A DNA stretch of 63,606 bases, filler included, from Klebsormidium nitens (taxonomy: Eukaryota > Plantae > Klebsormidiophyceae): assembly GCA_000708835.1 (NCBI GenBank). It is 8 parts of 8 records of this genome, joined end to end, with 100 filler letters (N's around TTAATTAATTAA, not from the genome) between each part and the next. Parts side by side here need not be neighbours in the genome. Positions count along the whole stretch, not along the records: positions 1 to 27,792 come from DF237810.1; 7 more parts are not named here. One strand, written 5' to 3'. The translations under genes were made by a program, and so were the position numbers. Shown in pieces: positions 3,303 through 25,749 of the stretch; the stretch's first letter is position 1, and the number at the start of each line of letters is the position of its first letter. The notes beneath the pieces were generated by a model. The model did not search any database. It was given only the letters and a program-made list of their open reading frames with translations, and had not been told where the DNA came from.

Positions 3303-6300
3303 ATGACAGCCATACAGTATATGCACCAACATGACAACGACAAACCTCCCGATCAGCATCACGGCGGGACAGAACATTTATCTTCATTGAAGGGACTGGC
3401 AAGATGTTTTCCTTGTGGGGGGGGGCAGGAGGAGGCTGCTGCAGGGGAGCAGCTACCCCCCCCCAGGGCTCGGCGGCTGAAGCGCAACGTCTCGATGCTG
3501 TCAAAGTTGGCAGAAGGGAGTGGGATGGGGGAGAGGTATGGCCCTAAAATCCTCTGATCAGGTTTCCGGAGCTTGGTCATATGGCTCTGGTCTTGACCAT
3601 GTATGCTTGGATTCTCTCCGTCTGAAGCGAGTGCTGGTCCTGTGAACCGAGCGTATTGAACAATATGGTCACCTAGTTTAGACCTTGATGAGTGTAGCTC
3701 TATGAGAGCCGTTGCTCAACCTGAGAACCTGGGAAGAGGCCAGCGCTGAGGAGCCCCCACCCTTTACCCCCAGAGATAGAGCCCTTTCCTGTTTTATTGA
3801 TTGTGGGTTGGGAGCAGGGTTCTAGGTTATGCTCCCCTTTGCTGCAGCTCCACAATATTTGGTACCCAATTGACGAGATCGACACGAGGCAAACCCCAAG
3901 CAACTTCTTCTACCCTTCAATCACATGAATACCATTTGTCGAGCCAGAACGAACGGAATGAAGAACTACACCTTCGCCTATTCTGTGTTTCCTGCATCAG
4001 CCATTTGTAATATGCAGCCGGTTGATGAGAGCCCATGGAATGTCTCGTCAGGCACTCCCCTGGTCCCGCCACCCGATACAGCTGAGCCTTATGGAATATG
4101 GGGTTTCGTTGACTCATTTTGACACTCGTCAGCTGCTCTGAGCAGTGTAGTTCTGGAAGTTGCATCTGGTCAACAGAGGCCGGCCCCTTATCCTGTTTTT
4201 GCATTTACCGGCCGCATGAGGACATGAAAATCAGCCTCTAGTATTTGAAGCTTTTGGGTATTTGTGGACCACCAAAACTCTTCTGCACAAACGCACCATG
4301 CCCCAACCTTCATCCAAGCGCAACAAGTTCGACAAGCGGCCAGCCCCGAGCAAACTGCCAGCAAACTGCCTTGGGCAAACTGCATATTACTCTGAGAAAA
4401 TGCTAATGTCGGCTTTGAGTTGACAAGTTTACAGAATTCTGGCGTTTATATACTCACGCCCGTCATTACCTTCTCGTCAATTAATGCAGCTCTGCGACAG
4501 CTGTAAGCCCACTGCAACAGATTGACCAGCCCCCAGCCCCCAGCAAAGTGCATAAGAAGTCCTCCCACCCCATGGCTGATCAGGACATGAAACTTCAGCT
4601 CCTACTTTGAGAAACCGGGTGTGTAACTTGTCATCTGTCTTTTCTGCCGGATGCAGCTCTGCGACAGCTGTCACGCAACTGCAACAGATTGAAGAGAGGC
4701 CAGCCCCGAGTGGTTTTCTAGTGGACATTCCCCACCTGACCACTAGCGACGTAAAACTCGTCCAAGAGAGTTGGGCCAAGGTGGTGGAAGCCCATGGCGT
4801 TGGAGCGGTGACCCTTTTCTACGTGAACTTATTCACACTGGCGCCGCACCTGGAGTCGCTGTTCAAGAAGACCAAGTGAGTGTGTTCACACTGCCTTTTC
4901 ATTCTTCGAGAACACACCACACTGGCGCAATGCTTGAAGTTGCCATGCGAACTTCCAATCGGGTGTGAAAGTTTTGTATGCTCGTCTGCATCAAGCCCGG
5001 ATGCTTATACACTCATGATCGATGTGAAGGCAATTGCTCTTGACACCCGAGTGCAGACAGCAGTATGAGTAAGGTCAACAAGTCCGTCTTTCACAATATT
5101 ATATCGCCCTGGGAGGAGTGCATAAAGTTCTGGCACAAAAAGCTGTTACAATTGATCAACTTTCACTTTGGGGTCTGCTTGCTTTCTGTAGTCAAACTCA
5201 CCAACAGCGGTATCCTAATGTCTTGAACAGGCCCTTAGGAAACGCTGCTACTAGGTTTGATGTCTATCTCTATGGCAAGCGGCACGTGTGCAAGTATTGT
5301 CCTACGGTCCTCAGCTTTGAAAACCCTAAAATGTCACCTTTATGTTCAAATTTGCACATTTTGATGAAGCAGAATCCACTGGAATGATGGAGACCCGGAT
5401 TGGCCACCGAGCTGCATCGCAACCAGGAAAAGTTCTGTTGCAGCGTTGACATATATCCGTAGGGCTGAGAATCTGGAGCCCCTTAAAAATGCAAAACCCC
5501 AATGATTACGAGGCTCTTTACTTCTGCACATTTGCAGGAATCTACAGTCACAAAGAGTGGCTAATCGACAAGGCGCACAATTACCACCTCTTAAAGATCG
5601 AAGTTCCGAAATGGCACTGCTTCGAAAATGGAAGCCCCACATGAGGAAGTTGTCACTAGATCGGCTGAAACGTCTAAGAGACCACTTCAACAGACACGAT
5701 GGTTGACAAGTGCACATTTAAGGCTTTCTTCACGAAGTAGACTTCAAAGATACTGTTGAATGCCCCACAAACGAGTCGCTCTCTGCAGGAATATCCAAGA
5801 GGCAATGTTTACGGACATGATGATGACTCTGGTCGGCAAACTGCACGATTGGGAGTGGGTTGTGAGCGCACTGGAGGCGTCTGCGATCCGGCATCTGCGC
5901 TATGGAGTGTCCGTCTCCATGTTCCCCGCAGTCGGGCAGGTGAGGTTATATGTAACCGCTCTCCTTAAGTGCTCCAATTAGAGCTTTTGGGTTTGGGACC
6001 CGGGTTACTAACCCAGGGTTTGGGCATTCGGGCTACGGCGCGCTGTGTCCATGTTTCCCGGTAGTTGGGCAGGTGGTAAGGTTACACGTAACCGCTCTCC
6101 TTAAGTGCTCCAGTACCCATTAGGGCTTTTGGGTTTGGGACCTGGGTTACTAACCCAGGGTTTGGGCATCTACGGTACGGCGTGTCTGTGTCCATGTTTC
6201 CTGCAGTTGGGCAAATGAGGTTACACGTAACCGCTCTACTTAACTCCTCCAGTACTTGTCAGACACTTTGGGTGTACTTATCAGAGAATTGGGGTTTGGA

Positions 6301-9300
6301 CCTGATTCATCAATCTGTTCTTAAATCTGCACTACGGCGTATCATGGTCCATGTTCCCCGCGGTTGGGCAGTTATGGTTGTACTCAATGTTCTATTTCAG
6401 AACACTTAACAGCTCTGGTACCTGTCAGAGACTTTGGGATTGGACCTGGATTTCAAGCCAGGCTTCGGCATCTGCGCTACGGCGTGTCCGTGTCCATGTT
6501 CCCCGCAGTCGGCCAAATAAGGTTATGATTGACTGCTCTAGTTATCGTCACAAGCTTTGGGTTTGGGCCCTGGGTTTTCACTCTCAGGCTTTCCTATTTG
6601 GGGATTTGGTTTAACAATTCCAGATGCGTTCCGGGTTTGGATGTGCGCGGCAGCGTTTCGAGTTCCATGTCCTCAGCCATCGGGCGCGTGGGGTTATGTG
6701 CACCAAATTCGTTAGAGCGTTCAAAGTTTGGGACCCGGGTAATGAGATTTAGTGTCTGGGGACCTGCGCGCTAAAAGGACTCCGGTGTTCATGGTCCCCT
6801 CAGTCCAGCCGCTTGATCCGTTTGCAGGAGGATTATAACTACTAAGGACTTTGTATGGAAAGGTTAGGTTAGGGTGCCGTGAGGAAGAGGACATCTGGTC
6901 TCTTTTTACCAACTCTAGAACCGTGAAAGAACGTCGCTGCGTTGATTCCGAGCAGTCAGTCTCATCTTTCTCCCCCAGAATGGCACCAGAGCGCAAAGGG
7001 GGACGTGGCTGCAAAAGCGTGTAACTCTCCAAACGTCGCTGTCAATCAGCAGACCCGCGGACGAGTCCACTCTTCCAGCAGTTGCAAAGCAGTGCATTCC
7101 TTTACTTAGATTTCTCCTCTTTTCCCTTTCCCCAGGCGCTGCTGCAAACGCTGGACATGGGCCTGGGGGTCCACTGGACTCCGGAGGTCAAAGCGGCCTG
7201 GATCAAGCTCTGGACCGCGATCGTTTCTGTAAGCTTCGCACAATTCTGCTGCTCCTTGTGTTTCTGCGTCGAGGATAAGGTTTTTTACGCCCCTGCCTTT
7301 CGGTCTATATTGCGTGGAGTTCGCATCTCTTTCGTTCCTCTAAGTCGAGCTCAATTCCGTATCCTCTCCCTCCTTTTAACCAAACTCTGGACCTCGTTGC
7401 TCTCTTTTCGCTTCCGAGTCATTCTTATTGAGACGTGTCTTCGCTCTTTCGCCCGTCGTTTCTTGCTTTGATCTCCCTCCCTGGATCGAATGCTCACGAC
7501 CTCAAACAACTTCTTGAGCTTCGCCGCTCTTGTTCCCTTGCTCTTCCTTTGCACTCAGACTCGCTTCCCGTTCCTCGCCTGCTCTTTCAACCCTCTGTTT
7601 TAGTTTGCCGGACGCTCCCGGACGGCCCCCGAGGCCAAAGCCCTTATCCGCCCTTAATCAGACGGGAAGAGGAGTCATCAGAAGAGGGTTCTCCTTCCTT
7701 ACGGTCGTCTGCTATCTCAGCGGTACGAGCACCAATCAGTGATGCGAGCAAAGAACACGTCGCGATTGACCTCCGCAAGCACAATCTTGCGCTTCACGGA
7801 CTGCCGCTTTTGAACGTGCCGTGGCTCTTGGAGCGGTCATAGTGTGACAAGTAAGAAATAACCCTCGTCTCTCAGGATCTGGCTTCCAGCGAGTCCTTTC
7901 CCCGTGAGATTTGTTCCATGTTTTTCAATCAAATCAGCCCAGGCTACAGTCTCCACGTTCCGTTCCGTTGACCTTTGTCGTCTGCCGTTGTCTCTTTTAG
8001 TCATGTCGGTGCACCTGGGGCAGAGTCCTCTTCACTCCGACTCAACCTTCAAAAGCCCCACTAAACTTTCCTTCTCCAGGCAGCAGTCTTAGATTCCCCT
8101 TCCACTTATTCTTGGCGCCTCCAAATTCGGTTTGGGTGATGTCCGTGCCCTTGAAGGTGGACGCCTCCACCCGTACCGTCGTGGGCAACGTCTCGCTCCA
8201 GTCACGATCGAGCTGGACCGACCCCCTTATTCCGCTTCCGCTCGGCTGATCCGTATTATTTTCCGTTCCGCTCAGGTGATGTCCGTGCACCTGAAAGCTG
8301 ACGCGTTGACCCGCGCCGTCGCGTGCAACAGCCTCGCTCTAGTTGCGGCCGAGCTGGATCGAGCGCCCCGGGGAGAACGTGTGGAGCGACCGCTGACCAA
8401 AATGCCGAGCGGACTGACCCCCCTGCTCATGGCGATCCGAGACAAAAAGGTCGATCTCGTCAAGTGAGAAGTCAAACTCGAGAATTCAGCTGTTCGAAAC
8501 ATTTCCGTTACTGGCAATTGATCAATCAAACGATCGGTCGAACGATGGCGCTCACCAGAATGAACCCCCTGCTCATGGCGATCCGGGACAAGAAGGTCGA
8601 TCTCGTTAAGTGAGGGCCGAAATCGCGACACTCATTATTCCCGTTTACGTATCTTTTTGAAACGAGCAAATAAATGGATGGAACAAACGATCGAAGAAAG
8701 CGGTGACCGAAATGCCGCGCGGATTGAGCCCCCCGCTCATAGCACAAGAAGGGTCGATTTGGTGAAGTGAAACCCGAAATGCGAAAACTCAGCTGTCGTT
8801 TCCTTTCCCTTCTGGGCTCATCTAACGACTCCGTTCAGACCGCACCGAGTAGAACTCAAAATTGGCCATGCCTTCAAGTCAGTCGCACGGGAACTCGGGT
8901 TCTAGTCACAAGGCCAGGAGTTGTCAACAAGATATTGATAACCGTGCTAGTACATGCTTCTGGACGCTTTGGCATCCGCTCGCACCTCTACGAATGTTCT
9001 ACCATCTTTGGGAAGCGAATGGGGTAAACGTTGCCCGGTTAAGAGCTTCGATCACTTCTACAATTGCTCGACACGTTCAAGGTCCCGTTACACCAACTAG
9101 AGAAGCGAAGCCGGAGGGGGAGACAATGCAGATGGCGACAACCCCCCACGAAGAGGAACTTCGAATTTTCCAAATGGCCCGAGAAAGTTGGTTAACACTC
9201 GGGTTAATGTGCAGGTACATGCTCTCGGACATCCTATCCATCCGTTCTGACCGTACCGGGTATTACTACGGCCGCGCGCAACTTTGGGCGACCCACCCGA

Positions 9301-12300
9301 CGATCGTGAACGAGATTGTGGACAACGTTCCGACGGCGATGAAGGAGTTGCTTGATGGGTGCTACTGGCAGAGCGGCCATTCCACGGACGGGTCCTGGCG
9401 GGTGGGTTTCTTAACCCACTATTCTCTAGTCATTGTTCATTGTTGGGTCACGGAGATACCCTTTCGATCTAAGTCGAAATCCTTGTTGGCTAGTGTACTC
9501 CGACGGCGCTAAAAAATGTGCTCAATGAGTGAACCGGCAGAGCGGGCATGCGACGGACGGGTTCCGGCGGGTGAGCTTCTTAACCCACTTTCTTCTAGGG
9601 TCCAGGATTTCTGGTTACGGAAGTACTTGTAAGTTCGATAAATGACCAACTTTCCTCTGGGATTTAAGGTTTTGGATTATGGAGGTACCAGTTCCTTTAA
9701 GTTGAGATCCTTCAAACAGATGCCGAGGGCGATGAAGGACCTGCTGGCCGAACTGTCACTCCGTGAACGGACTTTGTTCTCATCCTATCTCGTGGATGTA
9801 CTCAGCTTATCGCTGTCCCAAAAGAAAATCCGTTCCATTTCGCAGGCCAACTCTTTCTATTCTAGTGCCTGTGCAGGAACCCCCATGACCATATCGCCCT
9901 CCTTGACTTTCTCTCCCTGTCAAAGTTTGGTATTCCGTGAAGCGCATGCAAACTTTTTGAGACCGTTTACAGGCACCCCACGAACCCAATGCTGCCACCA
10001 ACCCGAGTTCACATTCTCTTTCTCACAACTCGTCTCTCTGGTTTCCTTACCCCTTTTCTGTTTAGCACAAGGTCGCCACATTTTCTTTCTTACAACTTCG
10101 TCTTTCTGGTTCCCTTAACCCTTCTCTGTTGTATCCCGCTGGCCAACTTTTACATTCGGGGCCTGTACGGCGAACCCCAGAAACCGCATGCTACCATCCA
10201 CTTAACCCAACTTCACCATGACTGTTTCACCACTTCGGATTCCTGGTTTCCTTAACCCTTTCTCTTTCATCCCGCAGGCCGACTTCTACATTCAGGGCCT
10301 GTACGGCCAATCCCACAAAGTATATTCAACATGCACCTAACCCGATTTCACAATGGTCAAATTACCACTGCTTCTATCTGATTTCTTTAACCCGTTTTTC
10401 TTCAATCCGCAGGCCAACTTCTACATTCAGGGCCTGTACGGCGAACCCCATCGGCCGATCTCCCAATCACTTTGGCACAGTTCACCACCTCCTTTCCTGA
10501 AGCTTTTCCTTTGATTCCTGAACTCTTTGCAGGCAAACTTTCGCTTGTGCGAGCACCCGAAAATGCGAATTTTCTCTCATTCCTTGACCAGTTTTCGTTC
10601 CATACTGCAGGCCAACTTCTACATTCAGGGCCTGTACGGCCAATCCCACAAACCCAATGCTACCATCCACTTAACCCACGTTCACCTTGTGGATTCTACC
10701 ATGCACTTCGTCGTTCTATTTACCTTAACCCTTTTCTGTTCCATCCCGCAGGCCAACTTCTATATTCAGGGCCTTTACGGAGAACCCCATCGGCCGATCT
10801 CCGCAATCACTTTGGCACAGTTCACCACCTTCTTTCCTGAAGCCTTTCCTTTTATTTCTAAAGTCTTTGTATCTGGGTTTGCGCAGGCAAACTTCCGCTT
10901 GTGCGAGCCCCCAAAAGTAAGGATATTCACTCATTCCTTGACCCGTTTTCGTTTTATTCCGCAGGCCAACTTCTACATTCAGGGCCTGTACGGCGAACCC
11001 CACCGACCGATCTCCAAATCGCCGCTGGCTCAGATGCTCAACCTGCGCGACAACGAGGCTTTCCAGCACCCCGTTACCGGAATCCTTATCTTCCAGAAGT
11101 GGAACATGTTCGGGCGCCGCGTATTCTTCCGAAACATGGTGATCGGATGCTCCGCATTCCTGCTTCTCGTGTTGGGGTGAGTACAGCTCTATCGAAGCAA
11201 GCTCCTCGTTCGAGTGAGAGAATTGAGGCAGATTGGTCAGTCTTCCTTTTGTGTGAATCTAGACTGATCAGGTAGAAACTGGAAGGTTGCTCGGAAAGGA
11301 CGGTGTGAAATTCAGAGCGTGTGAATCTAGACTGATCAAGTTGACACTCAAAGGTTGCTCGGAACGTGCGGTATAATATCCTGAGCTTGGCGACTCAGTT
11401 GAAAGTAGACCGCGCTCTTTCGTGTCAATCTACCTCGCAAGACGACGGTTTGCCGTTCCGTGCCCTCTTCTGGGTCTTACCTTAGAACCCAGTTACCTAA
11501 CCTCCTCGATCCACAAAATTCTGGACGCTTTGCCTTTCAGAAGGTTGACAAACAAGGGTTTCTCTTCGTAGGTACGTCGCTTGGCCTCGCCAGATCGACG
11601 GCCTGCCGTTCCGTGCCCTCTTCTGGGTCTTCCCTTAGAACCCAGTCACCTAACCTCCTCGAACCACAAAAGTTTAGACGCTTTGACTTTCAGAAGGTTG
11701 ACACAAAAGTTTTCTCTTCGTAGGTACGTCGCTTGGCCTCGCCAGATCGACGGCCTGCCGTTCCGAGCCCTCTTCTGGGTCTTCCCTTAGAACCCAGTTA
11801 CTTTACCCCCTCGAGCCACGAAAGTTTAGACGCTCTGATTTTCAGAAGGTTGACACAAAAGTGTTTCTCTTCTTAGGTACGTCGCTTGGCCTCGCCAGAT
11901 CGACGGTCTGCCGTTCCGAGCCCTCTTCTGGGTCTACATCATCGCAACGTTGATCGCCGAGATCCGGCGCGCGATAGCCGTTGGATTCATCGAGGCCGGT
12001 TTCTTGGGCTTTGCGATCCCGATCCCGGTCCACTTCCTCTCGGTGATCCAGTTCGTGCGGCTCGTAATGGACATTTTGGTCTTGACGGCAATCCCTTTCG
12101 AGCACACGTGGAACAAGACCGGCAAGTGAGTCACCAAACTGGGTTCAAAACGGTTGAGGATTTTTTCGCTTTCAGCGGATTTGACGGAGTCCTCAACGGA
12201 CTTTCTCTCGGTGTCAAGTTCGTGAGACTCGTTCCGGATCTGCTGGTTTTTGCGGCGATTCCATTCGAACACACGTGGAACAAAAGCGGCAAGTGAGTGA

Positions 12301-15300
12301 ATAAGCACACGGTTCAAGCCTTTTTTTGGTTCTCAACGGTTTTGACGCTTCTTTGAGTTCTCGACGAAGTTTCTCTCGTTGATCCAGTTCGTGGGGCTCG
12401 TTATGGTCTTGATGGCGATCCCGTTCGAACACACGTGGAACAAGAACGGCAAGTGAGTAACTAAGCACACGGTTGAACCCTTTTTTTGCTTCTCAACGGG
12501 TTTGACGGTAATTCGAGTCCTCGACGGGACTTTCTCTCGGTGATTTTGTTCGTGAAACTCCTTATCGATCTGCTGATTTTTGCGGCGATACTGTTCGAGC
12601 ACACGTGGAACGAGGACGGAAAGTGAGTAGACTCAAAACGGTTGACCCTCCCTTGATTCTCATTAGGTTTGACGGATCTTTAAGCAAATATCTCGGTCCG
12701 CTTCTCTTGATGATCGAATTCTTGAGACTTGTACTGGACCTTCTAGTCTTGGCGGCGAATCCGTTTGAGCAAGCGTTCAACAAGAACGGGAAGGGAGTGG
12801 CTGAACTGGTTTTAAGACGGTGGGAGTTCCCTTCTTATGTATAAATGTGGGTGACAATCTTCTGAGCGATGGTTTTCCGAGAACCATTCCGTGCGGCTTG
12901 GTGTATGCATATTTTGGAGGCACTATGTGGAAGGAGACGGGAGAATGGATGACAGCACGTTTGAAGGCATTGCAGAGAGAAACGTTTGGCTCTCCTGTTG
13001 GGGCAAAGCAAGTCTGGGCGGATTTTGAGCGAGCATCCTAAATCCATCCCGTTTCCCGTCCGTGAGGTAAAAAAGAGAGTTCAAATGCGTAATGATCGAA
13101 ACGGCTGGTCCTGGCGGCGACCCCGCAACACACCGCGTCTGAATTCTCTGAATCCCTGTTAAAGGAAAGTTCACTTTTACGAATAGGAGTCTCAAATTGC
13201 TCTCTATCCTCGCAAAAAGTCTGCCCGGCCGAGGGTTCTGCTGCCTCTGATTGAATACCTTGTCACGTTCTCCTAAGCTCGAAGGCAAATCTCCTTCGCA
13301 CGCGGGCGAGTTTGCCGGAGCAAAGCGTCACTAGTCGCATGCGTTGCAAACAACACAGCCAGAAATCAACCCAACTACGTCTCGCCCTTGCAGGACCACG
13401 GAAAGCATCCTCATAGCCACGGCGACCATAGCGTATTGCTTCCAGCTGCTCCACTACTACCTCGCCTCGCGCGAGCTCTCATCGTTCGTTTTCACTCTGA
13501 GCCGAATGATGTACGACCTCGTCAAGTTTATGGCGGTGTTCATACTCATCTGGGTCGGCTTCGCGCTCGCCTTTTATATTCTTCTGGGCGATCTGCCGAC
13601 CCCGGAAGGCTCCTCCGCGACTTTCACGAGCGTTAACTGGTCTTTTACCACCTTCTTTATCATGCTCTACAGGTGAGTATTGATCGGTCGTTCAATACAG
13701 CTCTGTTCGAGCAATCTGCCCATTTTGACGTATGTTAATCAGTCTGCTGCTGGCAGATGTCAGTCTAGATTTGTCGCCACTACATTCATAATGCTCTATA
13801 GGTGTGGATTACTAAGTCAATTCATAAAAGTTCCTTTCGAGCAACATGCCACTTTTAATAGGAATCCTTTTGTGGGTTGGTGAGTCTGCTGCCGACTAAG
13901 ATTGCTCTGGATTTGTCGACGCTATAACTGGCAGGTTGCGCGGGAAAAGCTGTAAGGCAAGCTTGCCTGGAGTAAGCAAGTTGATTGCTGAACATAGTAC
14001 GCTTTTATTGAAGCGTTTGTTGCGAAAGGTACTTTAGTATGCTCAATTGGGCGTCGCAACTCTTGTCTGCGACGTCAGGCATCAGACAATCACAGAAATC
14101 CACACTCGACAGTCGGCCTAAGGCTTGTTTGTTCCCTGTTGCAGCTGAGTTAGACTTTCCAGGCCATCGGAGATCGCCCTGATCAGGGGCGTCGCAGATT
14201 CTGGCTGCCCTATCAAGTAGCATTCTTAAATTTCCACCGCCAACTTTGAGTTACCAACTTCTACCATCAACTCTAAGTACACTTTTTCTGAGACTTGTCT
14301 TCTTACTGCAGCTATGCCGAGTTCGACTTCCAGGCCATTGAGAACAGCCAAGTCAGGGCCGTCGCAATCGTTCTTTGGTTCTTCTACTTGATGCTCGCGA
14401 ACCTGCTGCTATTGAACCTGCTCATCGCCCAGTTTGCAACGACCTACGAGAAGGTCTACCGAGATAGTTACGCCGTCGCGCTGAGAAAGTGAGTATCGCA
14501 CGAGCCCCCATACTGGCTCACCCTTTTTCTGAGCGCTTACTTGCAATGCTGTAATCAAATGTGCATCATCTTAAGCTAGCCCAGACTTGTGCACATCCGC
14601 TTATCGTGAAGCGCATCCGTGGCAGCAACTAATTTGATTCGACCTCAGAAGGTCTTTGTAGCCCGGAAAATCTATGAGTTGGCCCAAAAGATCACCAAAG
14701 CCCTACCGGGTACCCATCGGTGCAGACGGCAACAAGATAACAAAAAAACCAATCCACTTTCGGCTCACCCCAATCTACTCCTGGTGCCGATTCGGTTAGG
14801 GGGCTCGTACGGTACTGCCAACCTCGGAAACCCACAGGAAAATCTGGCTGCTAACCAGGCTGATTACCAGATTCGAGATCTCAGTTTCTTGGACCAATAT
14901 CCGGGCTTTGACCTCGTTCCGAGGCTGGCTACCGCCCACTTCTGCTTACTGGACACATAACCCACAAGCAGCTCGTAACCGTACATGATTAAGGGCCAAA
15001 AAGTCCTGTGTTTGTGCAAACCTGTTCAAGTTTTCGTCGCCCACTTGACCAAAGTGTCAACATGGACGGGGTTGACGAACAACTCTGGTAATAAGCTCGG
15101 TTCGGATTGCGTCAACGGCCAAAGCGGAGCGTCAACAAACAAACCGTAGTCCAACGTAACGATTCCGAAACGGAATTTTGTTCGAACTACTTTGTAACAA
15201 TCCGGACGAAATTGCGGAATCATAATCATGATGAATCCGACAAGAATCCAAACGCCTTATATTGTCACTTGGAAACGGATATCCTAGCTGGTTCTGGCAG

Positions 15301-17435
15301 TTTCATGGCTTCCAAGGACCATTCTAAAGTTGGTCAACCTTCCGAGTTTCTGATTTTCCAGATGCATAGAAATGTTTAAACGATAGAAATGATCACCAGG
15401 TTGGAGTACGGGTGATACAATAGCTTTTCTCCCTGGTTTGCAGGCTCGCCCATGAACTCTTAGCGATCGAAGGCACCTTCTCGACCGAGGAACGGCTCAA
15501 GCACTACAACAAACTCAACTTCGACCAGCCCCTCGAGTTTGACGAGTTTGACGCGGGGCCGTCAGGAGGCATTCAGGTAACATACGCTTTACCGCTTTGC
15601 TCACACTTATCTGCCAGTAGGATACGCTATTCCGCTGTGCTTGTGAGCTATCTGCCATCGGCCGCCTTGTGAGGGGTCCGTCAAATAGCTTTTTGATGCG
15701 CTCGACGACGGCCGACAGGAATATACGCTATACTGCATTCAGCCGCCGTTTGAACCGACGGTGCAGTGCGATCCGCTTGCAACTGGGCCGGAACGGAAGA
15801 GAAGCTGAAACCCATTGCAATTTGACCTGGGAGAATGCACAGGAACCGGAGCGATTGCGGCCCCCGACTCGAGGCCGGTCCGCACTAATTCGCTTTCTGC
15901 ATCTGAGAGAGCAGCCGTTCGAATATTGCTGATCATTCAACTCGCTGCTGGACTATTTACATGCTCAGTTTCTGTGTGTGCCCTTAAACGAATTTGATTC
16001 CGGGCGACTCGATTACGCCCCGTTTGAACGCTCGGATTGGAATCGCAAATACCTTGCCGGAATTGCGAGTGTAACGTGCGCTTGTTTTGCCAGTGCAAAA
16101 ACGCCGTCTCTTCGTGAACCGCACAATATCAGCGTCACAATGACGATCTCTTGCTGACACCCATTCCAGAATAACGTCAAGCAGGTGCTTCAAGACGTGG
16201 ACACGTCAGCCGACAAGATCGTGGACCGCATCCAGCGGTTCGGCGGCAAGTCCGCCCCCGATTTGCCCTGGCCGGGGGAGACCACCGAGAACTACAACCT
16301 CGTTTCCGGCCCGGACAACGGAACGGACGAGCGGAAGCCCGCCGCACCGGAACCGGCTCAACGGAAGCCCGCCTCACCGGAACCGGGCCATCGGAAGCCC
16401 GCCGAACCGGAGAGACGAGCGGGTCGTCCGGCTGCCAGCGGAGAGGGAGGAGGGGAGGGGCCGGGCGCGGCAGAGAAGAGTCCGATCGAGTTTTGGAACA
16501 ATAAAGGGCAGGCGGAGCGTTTCCGGATGATCGCAGACTGTAGGGACGACTCTTCTCTTACGGAGTCAGAGGCGTTTTACCGGGCGGGCGTGTTGAGGGG
16601 CCGGGGGGATGGGCCGGTGCGGAAACGGCGGGCGAGCTTGACCAGGATCGTTTCCGCCGCGGAGCTCGCGGGGCACAAGACGCCGAAGTCCAAGTGGCTG
16701 GCCATACACGGGAAGGTGAAGACTCGCTTCTTGCCAAGCCCGCATGAAATCTGATTGCAAAATGTGGTTTAAATACAGTGCCTCGAAATCCCAAGCCAGC
16801 GAAGGGTTCTGGGAGTCCAAGTGAATTCTCGCTTCTTTGCCAAGCCCACGGATCTTGTTGAGTACTGTTTGATTTCCGGAGGTCGACAGCAAATGCATCT
16901 GAAGGCAATAGAGATTGTTCGCTTTCGAACCGGGAGAAGTCCGCGCTTTGATCAATCTTGCTTTGATCCGTTTTCCAGACAACCATTCTCGGAGGCTGAT
17001 TTATTCACAGCTTTTGTCGAGGCACTAAGGAAACGTAGGCGTCGCCCCATCCTTGATCTACGACTCTTGTCCACTACAGGGACATACAGCCTTTGAAGTG
17101 TTGGAGAGTCTCGCTGCGAATCGTGACCATGTACTGTTTTGGGCGACCGCCAAAGCGGAGACCGTGCTAAACGTTCGCTAAGTAGGAACGCTCTTCCAAC
17201 GCCCTCCCTATTGAAAACGTGTGTACTCATTCGTATGCAGGTGTACGATGTGACGACATTTGCCGGTACGCATCCCGGGGGGTTGATCATCGACTCAGCA
17301 TTGGGACGCGATGCTACTCAGGAGTTTGAGGCTTCCGGACATAGCGATTACGCACGGGGCCTCTTAAAGCCGTTGAAGGTGGGGCGACTATTGCCAGCAC
17401 CGTCAAGCGATCAGCATGGCTACTTGGGTGGTTAA
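3303..17435 (+). CDS. 13-exon gene: globin + ankyrin-like repeats + TRP-type 6TM cation channel + C-terminal cytochrome b5 heme-binding domain (about 948 aa)
   Basis: Exons 3303-3535, 4657-4875, 5789-5939, 7136-7228, 8276-8463, 9215-9401, 10965-11176, 11877-12125, 13394-13672, 14312-14488, 15444-15576, 16185-16715, 17241-17435. All introns are GT-AG, all phases match, total 2847 nt = 949 codons. Junctions give sensible peptides: LFKKTK|NIQ, FPAVGQ|ALLQTL, WTAIVS|VMSVHL, GGIQ|VLQD, WLAIHGK|VYDVT. Exon 1 and the start codon are the least certain. Confidence 0.85.
4657..8299 (+). CDS. Globin domain (3/3 fold, flavohemoglobin/single-domain-globin-like) of the fusion gene, exons 2-5
   Basis: LTTSDVKLVQESW (A helix), TLFYVNLFTLAPHLESLF (Tyr at B10, Phe at CD1), IQEAMF (probable Gln E7), SAIRHLRYGV (proximal His F8), FPAVGQALLQTL (G), WTPEVKAAWIKLWTAIVSVM (H). 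Confidence 0.92.
6020..6700 (+). repeat. About 5 decaying tandem copies of the exon 3 3' end plus donor region inside intron 3
   Basis: Recurring GCGCTACGGCGTGTCCGTGTCCATGTTCCCCGCAGT(C/T)GG...AGGTTA variants near 6022, 6165, 6325, 6468 and 6640. Confidence 0.85.
7995..8775 (+). repeat. Copies of both ends of exon 5 in the flanking introns
   Basis: Exon-start copies near 8000 and 8137 (GTGATGTCCGTGCCCTTGAAG); exon-end plus donor copies near 8560-8615 (almost perfect, LLMAIRDKKVDLVK then GTGAGG) and 8710-8775. Confidence 0.85.
8300..9401 (+). CDS. Ankyrin-like repeat region of the fusion gene, exons 5-6
   Basis: SGLTPLLMAIRDKKVDLVKYML fits the ankyrin GxTPLxxA...V..LL pattern; the preceding LTRAVACNSLALVAAEL resembles a second degenerate repeat. 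Confidence 0.6.
9530..10800 (+). repeat. Intron 6 array: copies of the exon 6 end/donor and at least 5 copies of the exon 7 acceptor plus start
   Basis: GCC(A/G)ACTT(C/T)TAC/TATATTC(A/G)GGGCC..TACGG unit starting at 10142, 10278, 10413, 10611 and 10752 (true exon 10965); all but 10142 follow CAG. Donor-side copies near 9535 and 9722. Confidence 0.9.
10965..14488 (+). CDS. TRP-like ion-transport domain (pre-S1 to S6 and TRP-helix region), exons 7-10
   Basis: Pre-S1 HPVTGILIFQKWNMFG; six hydrophobic segments; S4-S5 FTLSRMMYDLVKFMAVFILIWVGFALAFYILL; pore helix FTSVNWSFTTFFIML..EFDF; S6 LMLANLLLLNLLIAQFATTYEKV, matching the TRP LLNLLIAM..TY..V consensus. Confidence 0.88.
11430..11800 (+). repeat. 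About 152-bp tandem copies of the exon 8 acceptor plus start in intron 7
   Basis: TAG|GTACGTCGCTTGGCCTCGCCAGATCGACGG at 11572 and 11724 versus the true exon at 11877; a fainter copy near 11435. Confidence 0.92.
12130..12810 (+). repeat. About 165-bp tandem copies of the exon 8 3' end plus donor in intron 8
   Basis: CACACGTGGAAC...AA|GTGAGT recurs with intact GTGAGT at 12293, 12453 and 12623 (true donor 12126); a degraded copy near 12770. Confidence 0.92.
16647..17435 (+). CDS. Cytochrome b5-like heme-binding domain split by the last intron of the fusion gene
   Basis: IVSAAELAGHKTPKSKWLAIHGK, donor GTGAAG at 16716, acceptor ATGCAG ending 17240, then VYDVTTFAGTHPGGLIIDSALGRDATQEFEASGHSDYARGLL. 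Both axial His motifs (HPGG, GHS) are intact; stop TAA at 17433-17435. Confidence 0.92.
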
Positions 17436-20423: not shown

Positions 20424-23400
20424 TCACAATTCCGAGCGGATTCCGCTCCCCCTCTCGACCGGAACATAAGCGACTCCTGCCCCGGTGCCATTCCCCGAGA
20501 GACGCTCCAGCGTCAAGAGGCACGAAGTGATCTCTGACTCGTCATGAGCTCTGCTCAATTCCACCAACGTTTTGCGCGTATTCACACCATCCGGGTAGAC
20601 ATTCCTCGTTTCGCTCCCAGACTCAGGCGGCAGAGACAGTTTCTCGTTTCGGGGGGCTTCCAGCTGCGTCTCTTGCTTCGCAAGCAGCCCCCCCGCCGCG
20701 GATCCCCCGATCAGCGTTTGCAGGAATTGGACTATGGAGCGCATTTGGGAGTGCTGCTCCCGCAATCGGAACACATCCGGGGGGGTAGAACCCCCGGGTT
20801 TTTTACAACCCAGCTCCAAGTCCGCCCCTTGCTCCTCCACAAGCGACCGGAGGTGGTCACTCAGCAGGGCGCATAGGATCGCGTCGTTCGTTCCCGGGGG
20901 GTACATTGCGCGCTGAGCGGGACCCCCCGAGGCGAGAAGCATTCCGGAGCTCTTGTTCCGCTCCGTTCCGTTCCTCGTTTCGGTAGCACAGCGCCCGGGA
21001 GATCCCCCCGACGCCCGCTTCCGCTTCCGCACACCAGCCTGCTCGCGCGGATTTACGGCGACTGCTGCTGATGTCATCCTCAGGCCAAACCCTGACGTTA
21101 TCGCAGCAGCTTCCGCTGACGCAGCAGCGGAAGGGGGCTGCATTCCGCGGAACGCCGTGCGGATCGCGTGCGGAATTGGCTCGGGGAATGGGGCCGTCTG
21201 AAAAGCGTGGTCGGCCGAGGGCCTTTCCGGGGCGAGAAGCGGTTCGCGCCGGGAGTCCCGGTACCAACCGGCGGATGACGTGTCCAGGCTTGTTGCCATT
21301 CGAACCGGGATCGTGACAATAGTCGGGGCAGAGTGGGGAGCCAGAGGAACGCTCAAGGAGCGACGGGGGGTTACGGGTTTAGGAATAACCCTATCGAAAT
21401 CCAGGGGTTCGAGATCCGAGAGCTGAGAGGTGAGGAGTTGTGAGGTCGAGTTTCGAGGGCTTAGAGGTCTAAGACTTTTGGCAAAAAGTCCCCGAAGATC
21501 CGCATTTCGGTCTTCAGATCCGGGGCTCGCGAAAGAGGGAGCGTCAACCCCCAGGTTCTGGGGGGTCACCTCGACTTGGAAAACCCCCCCCTGCCCGTAC
21601 GGAAAAGCGGCTCCCGCACCTTTTGACCAGTCGAGGGGGTCGGTCGGTGATCGACCCAAGGTTGCCGGCGGATTCCGCCTCCATTCCGCTGCCAATGACC
21701 GGGCCCACGCTGAATGAAACCGCAACTCCGCGGTAGGATTCATCGGGCCGTCTGCCAGTCTTGGCAGTACTTTTTCAGCGGGGCTCGGTTTTACCGGCGG
21801 GAGCGCTTGGGGTCGTTCCGGCGGCGGTCCGCTGCGGAATAAGAAGGACGGCCGGATTGAGAGGAGGTATAAAGGACAAGTTTTCTCAAGCAATGCCCGG
21901 GGTGGTTGAGAGTTTACGCAGGGGCGGGTCAGTTGTTCGAGATCAAAGTGTACCGCTCGGTCATGCAGAAATCTGAGCGTGTCGAACCGTGCGAGATAAC
22001 CCGCTTCGGATCAGCCTCTTAAAATGCAAACTGCTAAGAGTGCTTCGTAATGTTGTACATCCGAAGCACTGCCGAAGGGAGCTCGCGACTCGCAAATCGA
22101 ACTAGGAATCTGGACAAAACATGTACTCGCATTATTTTCCGAGTATGAGAGTCGTTTGAACGCCCGCTTGCCACTCGAAGAAGAGTAAAACGTGTCGTCG
22201 CTCGTTGCTTGCGGGACAGAAATCTATCAGCGGGCACTGCTGACACGACATTCCACCTCTCTCGTCAACGGCAAGGAACACCGAGAGATTGAATTCTCCT
22301 GAGTTCTAGTAACTTAGACGAAGCATATCGACTTGACCGCACTCAAAGAAGACGTCAGAAACAGCCCACTATCCGCAATTCAGACACCTCACCTTTCCGC
22401 ACTGACTGCTTTCTTCACCGAGCAAACGGCCGGGGACGTCGTCATTGCCGCCTTCTGTATCGACGGAAACGAAATTCACTCGGTCAGTCAACAGCAGAGC
22501 GACTCCTGGACCCTTGCTAGGAGCTGTGTAGGTGCGCGGAGCAAACGCGTGTCCGCCTCCCTCTTAAAACAGTGCCGCAGCCTGAAGTAGAACGTGGTCC
22601 TTCGTAAAAGACTAAAACCCGTTGACTGCGCATTCGCGACTCTTAGAACCGGACGCTCACGTCAGCAGAAGCTTTCTTCTGAATGTTGCCAACACTAAAG
22701 AAAGAGCGCATCGTGCGTCGAAGGGCGCCAGTGCTCGTCCGACCGGCGTGCGCAAGCAAAGAAAACAAGGTTGCAGGTACAAACATGATTCGGAGAAAGA
22801 GAGCGAAACCGAGAATGAAGAGTCGGAGCTTCTCGTTTTTGACCCGCTGGTGGGAGTCAAGGAGATTCTGAAAACGATCCGACAATCGGCCTTCAATAGG
22901 CGGTAGTGATCAAACGACCAACCGCATGGCGGTTGAAGATAAGCCGGCTGTATGCGGTGATTAAGATAGCTCGAGTTACCCCAAAGTCACAACTTGCGCG
23001 CATATGGCAGTTCTGCGTTGCCCTCTGGGTTATGTTAGTCAGAGTATCCCTGTGAAAGACAAGCGCGCACCTTGGCAGCGGTGATCTCTTTCCAGTGCGC
23101 TTTGATCGCGGCCTGGCTTCGTCCTGGCAACTTCTCCGCGATAGCCGCCCATCTACAAAATGCCCATACAAAAATGATTATTTCCCATTTACATCCTTAT
23201 ATCATATGAAGTTCACGCTCCCACAATCGGCGCCTAAAAGGCGCCCAAGTGGCTTCCAGCGCGTGCACCAGGTACGTGTCAGACATCAGATCCGCCTGAC
23301 ACCACAAAGGCACCATTATTGCCCTGACTGAGTAATCGACGCCCAAGGTATACGTATCTTTAGATTGACAACTAGATTTCAAGCGTGATTTTATTCCAAC

Positions 23401-25253
23401 TCATTATGCCGACTGCTGGAAGCAAAAGGTTACAACACGCTCCAGTTGCCTTCGTTGCCGTCTTTTTAAACGACTCTCAATCAGCTGACCTCTTCCAACG
23501 AAACCAGGGTTTCAGAATGTGCCAGGTTTTCTGTCTGAATCTGCCTGGCAAAGCTTCTCCTGTCAAACAGGATGCCACCATGCGTATCGCCGCTTATTTC
23601 TGACGCACCTGTTACCATGCTCCTGGTGTAACGCCCGCAAATCGTGCTCCTCTTCGGGCGTCCATTTCCGCTGCAAGAAGAGGACGCGACCACGTGTCAG
23701 TCCCCTGGCGGTCCACGTGTCTTCCAGCATTGAAGCACTTGAGAGACTCGGTATGGGGAATCTGTCTGTTTATTGAGGGCTCTCACTCGCAGAAGCTGCA
23801 AGCGCCGCCTCTCCCTGCGGCGCTCTCGTAGAAACATCCGCTGAGACCGATGTATCGTTTCGCCAGCTAGCATTCTGGAGCCTTTTCGTGCAACTGACGT
23901 CAGCGTCTGCGCTCATCCTCTCTGAGCGCCGAAGCCGCTCACGGGCCGTGACTATGGGTCGATCGTATGTTGTTTGAAGGACACTTCATGTATCATTCCC
24001 TGGTGATGTCGTTTTAAGTAATCACGAGTGCCTGTTTGGTGCGGCACCGTTTTAAGTGAAAAAACTGCCGGGCTTCTCAAAAATATGAGAGTACTACTGA
24101 CGTCAGCATCTGCTGGAAGACCCGCTGACGTCACGGTCCTTCTGAGGACTCCGTGGAGAGCTACGACTACTCGAAGACGGTGCACCGTGCCCATCAAGTA
24201 GCTGCCACCTAAGAACAACCATCCGCACTGCTGACGTCGGCGCCTGAGCTCAGATTGGCACTGCTGACGACGTCGAACCGGGGGCCTCACCGAGGCCAGT
24301 TGCGGGTCGAGCGCGGTGCGCCACCGGTGTCGGCACTTTTTGGCGGACCGTTTGCCGAGCAGCGCACGTGCGGCTGCCTCCCAGTCGGTCGTCTCGGGGG
24401 ATCCCCCGACAAACGCCGCCAAAATCGCGTCTTCTTCCTGACATCGAACGGCAGAGGTTTCGCTGGTTAGGAACCTTTGCTGCTTGTGGTTTTTGACAGC
24501 TCTGGAACCGCTCGGAGGTAATGGAATTTGTTGCGTGATCTATACGGGGCCTCTTTCTGGTCAGTTGTCTGAGAAAAGGCTGCCACTGGATTGCGTCGCT
24601 CCCTGCTTCTAGCATGGGATTGACGTTGGTCAGAAGCCTCTCCGATCCTGATTTCTATTCGAGGGATGGTGTTCGATGCGCTAGAGTTCTTTCGTCAACA
24701 TGAAAAGCTTCCTTGTCAGTGCTCGAGTCGACGGTCAGACAACGGCTCAGAAACGGGGGTTTCCGAAACAGTATAAGAGCGGGATGAAGATGTCAGAAAA
24801 AAGAGCGATTTGCCCTATATGAAAAGAAAGTCTCAAAAGAGAGGGTCACAAGCAACTCGTACGTACCAATGACTTTTGAGGACAGTTGGTCGTTTCCAGT
24901 CAACTCCACAACATCATCTACCCAGGAAAGGTGAAACTGACGGTCCCAAGGACTCGTGAAACCCACAGCTTTCCCTTAGAAAGCGCTGCTACTTCAGAAA
25001 GTCTGACCGTCTCTGAAATAGAGACAAAACCAAGATGGGTTACACAGGGCTGAAAAAGAAGGATGAGCTTAACCGTCCATTGAAACCAAAAGATGCAAAA
25101 AAAACCAAAAAGATGCAAAAAACAAGCGACTGACAAGCGGTTTCCGGGAGAGGAAAGTAAGCGCACCTTAGCCCATTTGGTGCGATTCTTGCCCGTGCGC
25201 AACTTTACTAGGACGTCCGAGTCCGAAGCGGAGTCTGGCTCCAAGACCCCTCC
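20424..25253 (-). CDS. R2R3-type MYB transcription factor-like gene; 5' end incomplete, 3' end uncertain
   Basis: Exons 25253-25167, 24437-24291, 23670-23609, 23152-23071, 22454-22393, 21972-20424 join in phase. R2: KWAK|EEDAILAAFV...DWEAAARALLGKRSAKKCRHRWRTALDPQL. R3: RKWTPEEEHDLRALHQEHGNR|WAAIAEKLPGRSQAAIKAHW, with the phase-2 intron at GNR|W typical of plant R2R3-MYBs. Long Pro/Ser-rich C-terminus. Confidence 0.82.
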
Positions 25254-25749
25254 CTGCAGATGCACGAAGACGACGTGAGCCAGACGCCCATGAAGGAAAA
25301 TCGACGCCAGGTTTACGCAAAGGTATGCTCAGATTCTTCTTGTCAGTGATTTTTCAAGTCAGAACCTTCGGCTGAAGGCACGAGTCTGGAAAAGGCTTGA
25401 GTCGATGCGTTTGGGAGGGTCAGCAAAGTAAGCTCGGATTCAAATCTTACAAAATGATATTGGTCATGTTTGGGTTAGAAGAGAAGCTAGTGTCTTTAGG
25501 AGCAGTGAGTCTTGATTTGAAACGACATGGTACCAACTAGATCAAACAATCTGGAATACGGTTGATCCCGTCAGCAATCGTCGTGCTAGAGCAAAGGGGC
25601 CTTCTCCTGCCAGCAAAAGCAAAAGATGAAGATTATCTGAAACCCTTTTCTTTTCAAGATTATCCAACCCCTCATACACCTGAAATTTCCTCAGTAAAGT
25701 GCTCGGTGCTGAAAAAGTGAAGCCCCTACATAAGAAGAGCCCAGAAATT

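Follow-up and report, generated by a model that had tools for sequence, protein, structure and literature searches.

The window analysed here is a stretch of 63,606 nucleotides of Klebsormidium nitens DNA, filler included, and positions 3303-17435 of it hold one gene on the + strand. This gene is already present in GenBank, at 3303-17435 on DF237810.1 (27,792 bp). When the 13 exons proposed in a preliminary description were joined by script, a single open reading frame of 948 aa was obtained. All 12 introns began with GT and ended with AG, and the spliced translation was identical, letter for letter, to the deposited K. nitens protein of 948 aa (P0005). The two fusion joints given in that description, WTAIVS/VMSV at 7228/8276 and AIHGK/VYDVT at 16715/17241, were found exactly as claimed. 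The deposited name "cytochrome b5 isoform" is uninformative and a misnomer. From the N- to the C-terminus the domain order is a disordered region, a globin, two ankyrin-like repeats, a linker, a pore domain of six transmembrane helices (6TM), a TRP-like helix, a C-terminal beta module, a tether and a cytochrome b5. In the whole protein Pfam detected Globin (E 1e-9), Ion_trans (E 3.5e-9) and Cyt-b5 (E 6e-20). The full protein was required for this, as a search with the separate exons gave weak Globin and Ion_trans matches and missed most parts. An open frame at 12805-13038 was considered as a candidate exon and rejected as not belonging to the gene.

Exons, the globin/channel boundary intron and a tether repeat of the K. 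nitens gene, in window positions
Feature	Position	Strand	Content
Exon 1	3303..3535	+	Start codon 3303; aa 1-77, disordered N-terminal region, pLDDT <50
Exon 2	4657..4875	+	Globin helices A-CD; Tyr B10 = Y133 (4820-4822), Phe CD1 = F147 (4862-4864)
Exon 3	5789..5939	+	Globin helices E-F; Gln E7 = Q154 (5796-5798), proximal His F8 = H186 (5892-5894)
Exon 4	7136..7228	+	Globin helices G-H; end of the globin-only part; Pfam Globin
Intron 4	7229..8275	+	Globin/channel boundary
Exon 5	8276..8463	+	Two ankyrin-like helix pairs, aa 242-261 and 281-301; family motif APRGER
Exon 6	9215..9401	+	TRPV/TRPA-type linker (coupling) domain; conserved IRxDR..YYYG..HP; pLDDT >90
Exon 7	10965..11176	+	Linker beta-hairpin (ANFYI), pre-S1 helix with fingerprint W403 and F411, S1
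Exon 8	11877..12125	+	End of S1 through S3 and start of S4; Pfam Ion_trans, model helices
Exon 9	13394..13672	+	S4, S4-S5 linker, S5, pore helix; Ion_trans E 5e-7 with this exon alone
Exon 10	14312..14488	+	Acidic pore loop (YAEFDF), S6 with N-L-I-A gate motif N639-A643, start of TRP-like helix
Exon 11	15444..15576	+	End of TRP-like helix; conserved C-terminal module PLEF..D.G..GG.Q, pLDDT 91-97
Exon 12	16185..16715	+	End of C-terminal module, beta strand DRI.RFGG..D.PWP; tether; first b5 strands from ~16647
Tether repeat	16332-16411	+	30-nt in-frame repeat
Exon 13	17241..17435	+	Remaining cytochrome b5, HPGG (H895, 17271-17273) and GHS (H918, 17340-17342); stop codon

The splicing of the gene was followed in RNA data. 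The joints 3535/4657, 4875/5789, 5939/7136, 7228/8276 and 8463/9215, which are all the junctions within 3401-9400, were recovered with zero mismatches in RNA contigs from 4 runs, so that the proposed joint between globin and channel is present in transcripts. A single contig of 3603 nt covers exons 1-6, and its leftover 2153 nt fit the leftover 1777 nt of coding sequence plus a 3' UTR of approx. 376 nt; a contig of 2638 nt from another run had an equal 3' extent. For intron 12 together with exon 13, a share of 0.23 of the words was found across 13 RNA runs, and 0.24 is the share expected with exon 13 present and intron 12 absent. For exon 9 the share of words present in the RNA runs exactly matched the exon share. 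The k-mer shares and the lengths of the RNA contigs thus support the joint 16715/17241, as proposed earlier, and the 3' half of the mRNA indirectly. The b5 domain is cut by intron 12, and its first part is therefore contiguous with the coding sequence on the channel side. It was confirmed that the locus is one expressed, spliced gene with one mRNA for globin, channel and b5. In some RNA libraries intron 4 was partly retained, with a depth of 34 against 88 (X6) and of 7 against 45 (X12), whereas the depth of introns 1, 2, 3 and 5 in the RNA contigs was 0. Read-through of intron 4 would lead to a stop at 7469-7471 and to a predicted globin-only product of approx. 312 aa.

The globin is predicted to have a canonical 3/3 fold with TyrB10, PheCD1, GlnE7 and HisF8 as ligand-pocket residues. 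Helices A-H in a 3-on-3 sandwich, His F8 and Phe CD1, all features of an F/M-family globin, were found. In PDB searches the sequence matched Hell's Gate globins, neuroglobin and Vitreoscilla Hb, and phmmer aligned it to the Hell's Gate globins 3wfw and 3s1i. No S-family sensor globin (HemAT or GCS) was among the best 60 PDB matches listed. When residues 104-240 of the AF2 model were compared with neuroglobin and HGbI, Z-scores of 18-19 were obtained, with an rmsd of 1.8 Å over 131-136 residues. The Pfam Globin score exceeds its cut-off and is modest (39 bits). Judged by sequence and model, the globin is of the flavohemoglobin/neuroglobin-like (F/M) type. Globins with TyrB10 and GlnE7 are known to have a high O2 affinity and to act as NO dioxygenases. 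The heme-pocket residues are well kept in the family alignment, with H186 in 93/95 sequences, F147 in 92/95 and Y133 in 78/95.

Between globin and membrane domain an ankyrin part had been proposed. No Pfam Ank family was detected in P0005 at E up to 0.1, and a family profile of the linker region matched ankyrin in the PDB at E 0.01, across one repeat. A full ankyrin repeat domain was rejected on these grounds. In the AF2 model, two helix pairs superpose on the final ankyrin repeats of TRPV3 (264 onward) and TRPA1 (549 onward). The proposal therefore stands in a reduced form: as far as sequence and model tell, the ankyrin part is about two degenerate repeats, and the globin effectively occupies the place of the ankyrin domain.

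The TRP-type channel of the preliminary description was recognised by sequence as well as by predicted fold. Pfam Ion_trans lies at 439-656, and the model comprises six transmembrane helices S1-S6 with a re-entrant pore loop and a pore helix at 591-602. Among PDB sequences, the channel matched Drosophila Inactive/Nanchung, TRPV1, TRPV3, TRPC3 and TRPA1. Residues 240-720 of the AF2 model align with TRPV3 264-744, TRPA1 549-1009 and Inactive 163-688 (Z approx. 18), and the structural alignments to TRPV/TRPA extend from about 240 to 714-725. The beta sheet of the linker is completed by a C-terminal strand (strands 345-352, 355-360 and 706-711, pLDDT >90). Similarity to TRPV3, TRPV1, Drosophila Inactive/Nanchung and TRPA1 reaches a sequence E of 8e-12 and a Foldseek E of 3.5e-10, with Z approx. 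18 over 400-437 residues. Shared with these channels are the linker with its beta hairpin, the pre-S1 'KW..F', S1-S6, the pore helix, the N-L-I-A gate motif, the TRP-like helix and the C-terminal beta strand. In contrast to them, the K. nitens protein retains only the ankyrin remnant with the globin ahead of it, lacks the TRP-box Trp and the S4-S5 Gly, carries a C-terminal b5 and is only 14-19% identical.

The TRP fingerprint was mapped by offsets from conserved anchors and by alignment to Inactive. Nine of its 12 residues are kept (W403, F411, F567, F598, Y629, N639, L641, I642 and A643), and three are missing, at positions G418, E538 and A660. At least 9 of the fingerprint residues were found in 95% of TRPs (PMC9242649), and the K. 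nitens count is the exact lower bound of that criterion. The S4-S5 Gly is replaced by E538. The TRP-box Trp after S6 is not there; its equivalent is A660, an Ala invariant across the family, and the helix itself is present in the model. With both this Trp and the S4-S5 Gly missing, the coupling may differ from that of TRPV channels. TRPA1 likewise lacks a canonical TRP box. On sequence and modelled fold, we recognised the channel part as TRP-type, TRPV/TRPA-like and of group I.

The C-terminal module is followed by a tether of approx. 115 aa that is predicted to be disordered. The cytochrome b5, a canonical one, was recognised by sequence: Pfam Cyt-b5 scored 71 bits against a cut-off of 23.7 and was found with exon 13 alone at E 1.6e-15, and PDB b5 structures (microsomal b5) were matched at E 4e-14. 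The axial histidines lie about 23 residues apart and both are kept in K. nitens and in dinoflagellates; the claim that His F8 of the globin and both b5 ligands are intact was thus borne out (H186, H895, H918). In the AF2 model the b5 domain is of low confidence (pLDDT 45-64) and poorly placed. Cytochrome b5 is known to reduce ferric hemoglobin and cytoglobin.

The mention of globin plus channel-like proteins in dinoflagellates in the preliminary description proved correct, and these proteins are the key context of this gene. We found more than 480 dinoflagellate homologs with the globin-linker-channel core, many of them from transcripts. They come from Symbiodinium, Effrenium, Durusdinium, Polarella and Prorocentrum, including MMETSP and Logan transcripts, and the entries are uncharacterised ('unnamed protein product' or 'Globin domain-containing protein'). 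Hundreds of intron-free dinoflagellate transcripts hold globin and channel within one ORF. The outcome of the searches depended on the query. The dinoflagellate family was reached only by using residues 480-1000 of P0006, and a profile search with a three-sequence alignment returned only the two K. nitens proteins. An exhaustive search of representative proteins with the S5-pore exon gave 4 proteins; since the S5-pore region is too diverged to reach dinoflagellates, this search says little on distribution. The second K. nitens protein, the paralog P0001, is 67% identical to P0005 and agrees with it in architecture and in the position of all 12 introns; it matches P0006 at E 8e-45.

An iterative HMM search recovered all modules, with globin, linker motifs, 6TM domain and C-terminal motifs collinear, and found the C-terminal module in 122/125 proteins. 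The alignment of 95 family sequences contains 23 invariant columns. A structure-atlas comparison gave TM-scores of 0.78-0.82 over 566-589 residues, globin included. The dinoflagellate proteins resemble the K. nitens protein in the channel-proximal globin with His F8, the linker (APRGER / IRADR..YYYG / ANFYI), the 6TM pore with NLLIAQ in S6, the C-terminal PLEF..GG.Q and RFGG..PWP and, in a subset, the cytochrome b5. They differ from it in their low identity (approx. 22-24%), with a very long branch between the groups, in the number of globin domains, two to three against a single one, in the distal residue, mostly His/Leu and not Gln, and in the place of the b5, which is N-terminal when present. 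Such an N-terminal b5 was found in 18 of the 120 dinoflagellate members listed, with Pfam confirmation in a check of 5 proteins. Some dinoflagellate members also carry EF-hands. The sequence comparisons indicate a family that is large and abundant in dinoflagellates, and a globin-channel core that is not unique to K. nitens.

We consider it somewhat more probable than not, reasoning from analogy with the related proteins, that the K. nitens protein acts as a one-polypeptide transducer from gas/redox state to ion flux, i.e. a heme-based, O2/NO/redox-regulated cation channel with the b5 as electron supply. Like its structural relatives it would form a tetrameric cation channel with both termini cytosolic, and the globin would sit where TRPV/TRPA channels have their regulatory ankyrin domain. 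Heme ligation and redox state (O2, NO, CO, Fe2+/Fe3+) would then act through the linker domain on the S6 gate. Electrons might reach the globin via the tethered b5, presumably from NADH-b5 reductase. By keeping the globin ferrous, or by resetting it after NO dioxygenation, b5 reduction could allow the sensor to cycle. Both ends of TRPV/TRPA-type channels lie in the cytosol, and the two heme domains should therefore be exposed to it, which speaks for the placement suggested earlier; a b5 at either end of the protein would reach the compartment of the globin. In dinoflagellates the b5 is N-terminal, which suggests that it was fused independently and that the parts are functionally linked. Most dinoflagellate members have no b5, and the core mechanism would thus not depend on it. 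NO signalling is plausible in K. nitens, whose NO synthases include one in fusion with ankyrin repeats and a globin (PMC8728061).

Known systems resemble parts of this arrangement. Bacterial globin-coupled sensors (HemAT, DosC, AfGcHK and the membrane-bound Geobacter GCS) likewise combine an N-terminal heme globin with a C-terminal output. In these sensors the ligand or redox state of the heme controls the output domain (PMC7475203, PMC8076648). Their globins, however, are of the S-family, whereas the best matches in K. nitens are F/M-family; an ion channel is absent from the outputs listed for them, and the K. nitens protein is eukaryotic. Flavohemoglobin and the cytoglobin/hemoglobin-b5-b5 reductase systems share with it a TyrB10/GlnE7/HisF8 globin served by a dedicated electron donor. 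It is established that b5 is the physiological reductant of ferric globins (see PMC3820574). In contrast to those systems, the K. nitens b5 is held in cis by a flexible tether, without a reductase domain, in a membrane channel.

The same parts could also make up an enzyme anchored in the membrane, with NO dioxygenase or heme redox activity. Globin and b5 would then catalyse the detoxification of NO, the reduction of nitrite or reactions with peroxide, and the channel would merely tether or localise them and be gated otherwise (Ca2+, lipids, voltage or mechanical force). The alignments give this reading some substance, TyrB10/GlnE7/HisF8 being the signature of NO-dioxygenating flavohemoglobins. 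Enzymes such as flavohemoglobin and nitrate reductase typically have a dedicated electron donor as part of the same polypeptide, and the EF-hands of some dinoflagellate members suggest other inputs. We nevertheless regard it as unlikely. In more than 100 family sequences the globin lies, without exception, directly before the linker domain, where a regulatory ankyrin domain would otherwise be, whereas a passive tether would tolerate other positions. Furthermore, globins without a b5, as found in most members, fit a ligand sensor better than an enzyme in need of electrons.

We give little credence to a heme-free globin that would serve as a structural or regulatory substitute for ankyrin, like RsbR and photoglobin, next to an independent b5 (a partner in lipid/sterol metabolism or a heme/steroid-binding module). 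Families of non-heme globins do exist (PMC8717448), and the modest Pfam score of the globin would agree with such a role. Against it, conservation of His F8, Phe CD1 and Tyr B10 is 82-98% among proteins of K. nitens and dinoflagellates with an overall identity of only approx. 22%, the model superposes closely on heme-bound globins, and the b5 has retained both of its axial histidines. Finally, that two or three neighbouring genes (globin, channel and b5) were wrongly fused by the predictor is hardly credible: introns of 0.5-1.6 kb between the protein parts and the read-through of intron 4 would suit such an artefact, but it is already refuted for the globin-channel junction by the exact exon 4-exon 5 joint in 4 runs and the contig across exons 1-6, and the b5 encoded across an intron absent from the RNA of 13 runs, the paralog and the dinoflagellate transcripts with globin and channel in one ORF argue against it as well.

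To our knowledge, the routes by which O2 or NO act on ion channels are so far indirect. They run through prolyl hydroxylases or cysteine chemistry on TRPA1, through sGC-cGMP-CNG cascades, or through heme loosely bound to BK or Kv channels. If the reading as a heme-regulated channel is true, this would be the first ion channel known to act as a hard-wired, heme-based sensor-effector for gases, with globin and electron donor built into the channel protein. For TRP biology it would mean a defined input domain that binds a ligand, and for globin biology a new output. The protein is also a candidate for a compact tool, a conductance that is genetically encoded and gated by gas or redox state. Dinoflagellates, among them the coral-symbiont Symbiodiniaceae, have many members of the family, and it occurs also in a streptophyte alga with NO synthases. 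Stress by O2 and NO is central to coral bleaching.

Extending the analogy to the whole family, we tentatively propose that globin-TRP channels may be an unrecognised class of direct heme-gated channels. In these, the globin would have replaced the ankyrin domain as regulatory input, and a pore permeable to Ca2+ would be opened or closed by the binding of O2 or NO or by the Fe2+/Fe3+ state that the tethered b5 sets. In dinoflagellates, where the family is greatly expanded, they could translate hypoxia, hyperoxia or NO into Ca2+ signals. The b5 would have been recruited twice independently, C-terminally in Klebsormidium and N-terminally in dinoflagellates, possibly also in cryptomonads. In Guillardia theta, EKX33177.1 and EKX39126.1 exceed 1000 aa and are described as having three globin domains and, at the N-terminus, a putative cytochrome b5 (PMC4101818). 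This N-terminal layout equals that of the b5-bearing dinoflagellate members, and the likeness is a lead only, drawn from a published description that leaves the remaining residues uncovered. Bestrhodopsins, rhodopsin-bestrophin fusions of unicellular algae including dinoflagellates, are likewise cofactor-binding sensors fused to an ion channel (cited in PMC11453091); their parts are unrelated to those studied here, with a retinal rhodopsin instead of a heme globin and a bestrophin instead of a TRP channel.

The literature searched, with most subscription journals outside it, yielded neither a paper on a fusion of a globin with a TRP or other ion channel nor a characterised channel of this architecture. 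The novelty suggested earlier holds for the literature searched and does not extend to the gene itself, which had already been deposited, nor to its core, which is common to hundreds of dinoflagellate proteins. The suggestion of an algal sensor lost on land was not upheld: the only green-lineage sequences found are those of Klebsormidium, whose very long branch adjoins the dinoflagellate family. Recent horizontal transfer from dinoflagellates was rejected as well, with the K. nitens pair approx. 6.7 changes/site from all dinoflagellate sequences, and it is also opposed by the 12 spliceosomal introns common to both paralogs.

A GC content of about 50% and short open frames broken by stops in the window pointed to an intron-rich eukaryotic gene. 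By exhaustive HMMER search we detected P0001, a paralog of 872 aa (GAQ91211.1, Klebsormidium nitens, record name "cytochrome b5 isoform"), with 80% identity to the S5-pore exon over that exon. A word-indexed search with P0001 returned P0005, the 948-aa protein studied here, under the same name. Exon boundaries were set by tblastn with P0001 as guide and by a brute-force splice-site search. The 13-exon translation equalled P0005 residue for residue, and 12 of 12 introns had GT..AG borders. The coordinates, exon count, protein length and both quoted junctions of the preliminary description agreed with the rebuilt model and with the deposited annotation. The P0001 gene has the same architecture, and each of its 12 introns falls at the same place in the protein. 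The P0005 gene is already in GenBank and UniProt, but misleadingly named; "cytochrome b5 isoform", used there for both proteins, covers less than 10% of the protein and masks the globin and the channel. The sole other called gene on DF237810.1 encodes a Myb DNA-binding protein of 743 aa (Pfam Myb_DNA-binding, Myb_DNA-bind_6), which has no evident functional connection with the channel gene.

Features of the P0005 gene and its surroundings, in window positions unless stated otherwise.
Feature	Position	Strand	Remark
P0005 gene	3303-17435	+	look-up by sequence, K. nitens DF237810.1
Intron 4	7229-8275	+	
Stop upon intron 4 read-through	7469-7471	+	
30-nt tandem repeat	16332-16411	+	exon 12, in frame
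Exon-edge copies	5890-6255, 6324-6509, 8004-8160, 8560-8767, 9538-9600, 10142-10820, 11433-11935, 12213-12614		
Myb gene	20424-26169	-	
Exon-edge copies, paralog	2680-2799, 4443-4526, 5620-5751, 6791-6838		positions in the paralog locus

Exons of the gene were present in many K. nitens RNA runs. RNA contigs from four runs, taken from four different studies, were aligned over 3401-9400, and the joints 3535/4657, 4875/5789, 5939/7136, 7228/8276 and 8463/9215 were seen in contigs of the four runs with zero mismatches, 7228/8276 being one of the two junctions singled out earlier for mapping. One 3603-nt contig of run X17 spanned exons 1-6 (contig positions 479-1450) and continued 2153 nt past exon 6, which corresponds to the remaining 1777 nt of coding sequence plus approx. 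376 nt of UTR. A 2638-nt contig of run X13 started in exon 4 and ran 2148 nt past exon 6, thus having the same 3' extent. The other junction, 16715/17241, was tested indirectly: intron 12 and exon 13 gave a share of 0.23 of the sampled words in thirteen RNA runs, compared with 0.24 expected for exon 13 present and intron 12 absent. The b5 coding sequence is itself split by intron 12, and its first strands lie in exon 12, contiguous with the C-terminal region of the channel. Of the proposed one-gene fusion, we regard the globin-channel part as established and the channel-b5 part as very probable.

Introns were partly retained in some RNA libraries. Intron 4 sits precisely at the globin/channel boundary and had a depth of 34 vs 88 in run X6; in three of the four runs its RNA contig depth was 15-40% of the exon depth, with zero depth in introns 1, 2, 3 and 5. 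Read-through would end the frame after about 312 aa, yielding a product with the globin alone. This retention could be a regulated isoform or merely slow splicing. For introns 9 and 12 the word shares exceeded those expected from exons alone, which suggests that parts of these introns, too, were retained in the same studies.

Pfam placed a Globin domain at residues 132-234 of P0005. Among solved structures it matched the Methylacidiphilum Hell's Gate globins (3wfw, 1.7e-16; 3s1i), neuroglobin and Vitreoscilla hemoglobin, and these alignments identified B10 as Tyr133, CD1 as Phe147, E7 as Gln154 and F8 as His186. His F8, Phe CD1 and Tyr/Phe B10 were near-invariant in the family alignment. The predicted globin superposed on neuroglobin and HGbI with Z 18-19 and an rmsd of 1.8 Å.

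Pfam Ion_trans covered residues 439-656, and residues 397-683 matched the TRPV channels Inactive and Nanchung of Drosophila (E 8e-12 to 1e-10), TRPC3/6, TRPV1, TRPV3 and TRPA1. Group I TRP channels share 12 fingerprint residues (PMC9242649); nine were present in P0005, with A660 in place of the TRP-box Trp, E538 in place of the S4-S5 Gly and G418 in place of one S1 aromatic. An AF2 model built from a 95-sequence family alignment had a mean pLDDT of 71.5, above 90 at residues 240-420 and 660-740 and low at the termini, the tether and b5. Its residues 240-720 superposed on TRPV3 264-744, TRPA1 549-1009 and Inactive 163-688 with Z of approx. 18 over 400-437 residues. Pfam found no ankyrin repeat in P0005, and the profile of the region matched ankyrin at E 0.01 via one repeat unit only. 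In the model the helix pairs 242-261 and 281-301 overlie the last two ankyrin repeats of TRPV3 and TRPA1, so the globin is predicted to occupy the place of most of their ankyrin repeat domain. The ankyrin part named in the preliminary description is thus reduced to two vestigial ankyrin-like repeats. At the C-terminus, Pfam Cyt-b5 covered residues 865-934, which region matched solved microsomal and mitochondrial b5, and the axial histidines were intact as reported before (H895 in HPGG, H918 in GHS). The repeat in exon 12 (2.7 copies, 88% matches) encodes proline-rich PAxPEPxxRK units in the disordered channel-b5 tether; the P0001 tether is shorter and does not contain these units.

P0006 (1054 aa), the ORF of an intron-free Logan transcript contig of 3253 nt, was 24% identical; it has globins and shares with P0005 the linker, channel and C-terminal motifs, but has no b5. 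With its linker-channel part as query, at least 489 proteins matched upon scoring the 8000 candidates that had the most words in common with it. Symbiodinium, Effrenium, Durusdinium, Polarella and Prorocentrum were named among the 120 listed matches, the rest being Gambierdiscus-labelled or unlabelled transcripts (MMETSP, EukProt, Logan). In an iterative HMM search the usual layout began with a globin and a second globin region, the latter matched in two pieces, and went on with linker, channel and C-terminal module. A cytochrome b5 lay N-terminal to the globins in 18 of the 120 listed; Pfam agreed for four of the 18. ESM Atlas clusters of 226, 169 and 56 members were annotated Globin and YVC1_C only, and their models matched P0005 100-714 with TM 0.78-0.82. 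EF-hand domains (PF13405, PF00036) occurred in some dinoflagellate members among P0120, P0122, P0123, P0007 and P0086, where a channel match in two pieces suggests an insertion inside the channel region. Parts of two successive globin-channel units share a single ORF in P0007 (1661 aa) and in P0086 (1551 aa), as read-through of the tandem gene arrays of dinoflagellates would produce. In the searches run, green-lineage matches were limited to Klebsormidium and one 87-aa JGI/IMG metagenome fragment, which does not bear out the idea of a sensor lost on land. The fragment (P0002) was 80% identical to the S4-S5-pore exon and indicates at least one more Klebsormidium-like organism with the channel.

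In the linker-channel tree the K. nitens pair joined the dinoflagellate clade by approx. 6.7 changes per site, and b5-bearing forms were spread over several dinoflagellate subclades. Both b5 histidines were conserved in the two lineages. Since b5 stands at opposite ends in K. nitens and dinoflagellates, two independent fusions would most simply account for the sequences. In a TRP subunit the N- and the C-terminus both lie in the cytosol. Together with the opposite placement of b5, this makes the best case, ahead of any experiment, for b5 acting jointly with the globin-channel core.

The gene, its expression, the identities of its domains, the conserved heme ligands and the place of the globin are directly supported. 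Judged from the families, P0005 would form a tetramer with cytosolic hemes, and the heme state would be passed via the linker domain to S6; in TRPV channels and TRPA1 the linker couples cytosolic inputs to the gate. The b5 would reduce the globin, by analogy with the methemoglobin and cytoglobin systems. We give the reading as a heme-gated channel about an even chance. Its main rival is that globin and b5 form a tethered enzyme by which the pore is not gated. Two further readings, a globin without heme and an annotation artefact, are unlikely. Judged from the pair TyrB10/GlnE7, the globin may bind O2 tightly and act as an NO dioxygenase, as flavohemoglobins do. K. nitens has two NO synthases, one of which is a fusion with ankyrin repeats and a globin (PMC8728061). 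The observation first made is confirmed and its interpretation partly supported.

No account of a globin fused to a TRP or other ion channel came up in full-text literature searches, and globin reviews list no channel among the chimeric globins. For two proteins of more than 1000 aa from the cryptomonad Guillardia theta, EKX33177.1 (1060 aa) and EKX39126.1 (1497 aa), three globin domains and a cytochrome b5 at the N-terminus have been reported, the remaining residues being left uncommented (PMC4101818). They may be unrecognised members of the globin-channel family. P0005 can be regarded as adding a new sensory module to the TRP channels, and just as well as adding a new output to the globin-coupled sensors.

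In at least seven of the 12 introns the neighbouring exon edge recurs, splice site included, as degenerate tandem copies. The exon 3 end (...HLRYGVSVSMFPAVGQ before gt) has three extra copies, the exon 7 start (QANFYIQGLYG) five copies and the exon 8 end (...FEHTWNK before gt) three; TRF gave repeat periods of 142, 153 and 160 nt. Similar but fewer copies were found at the paralog locus. It looks as if the introns have grown by tandem duplication across exon-intron boundaries, leaving decoy splice sites.
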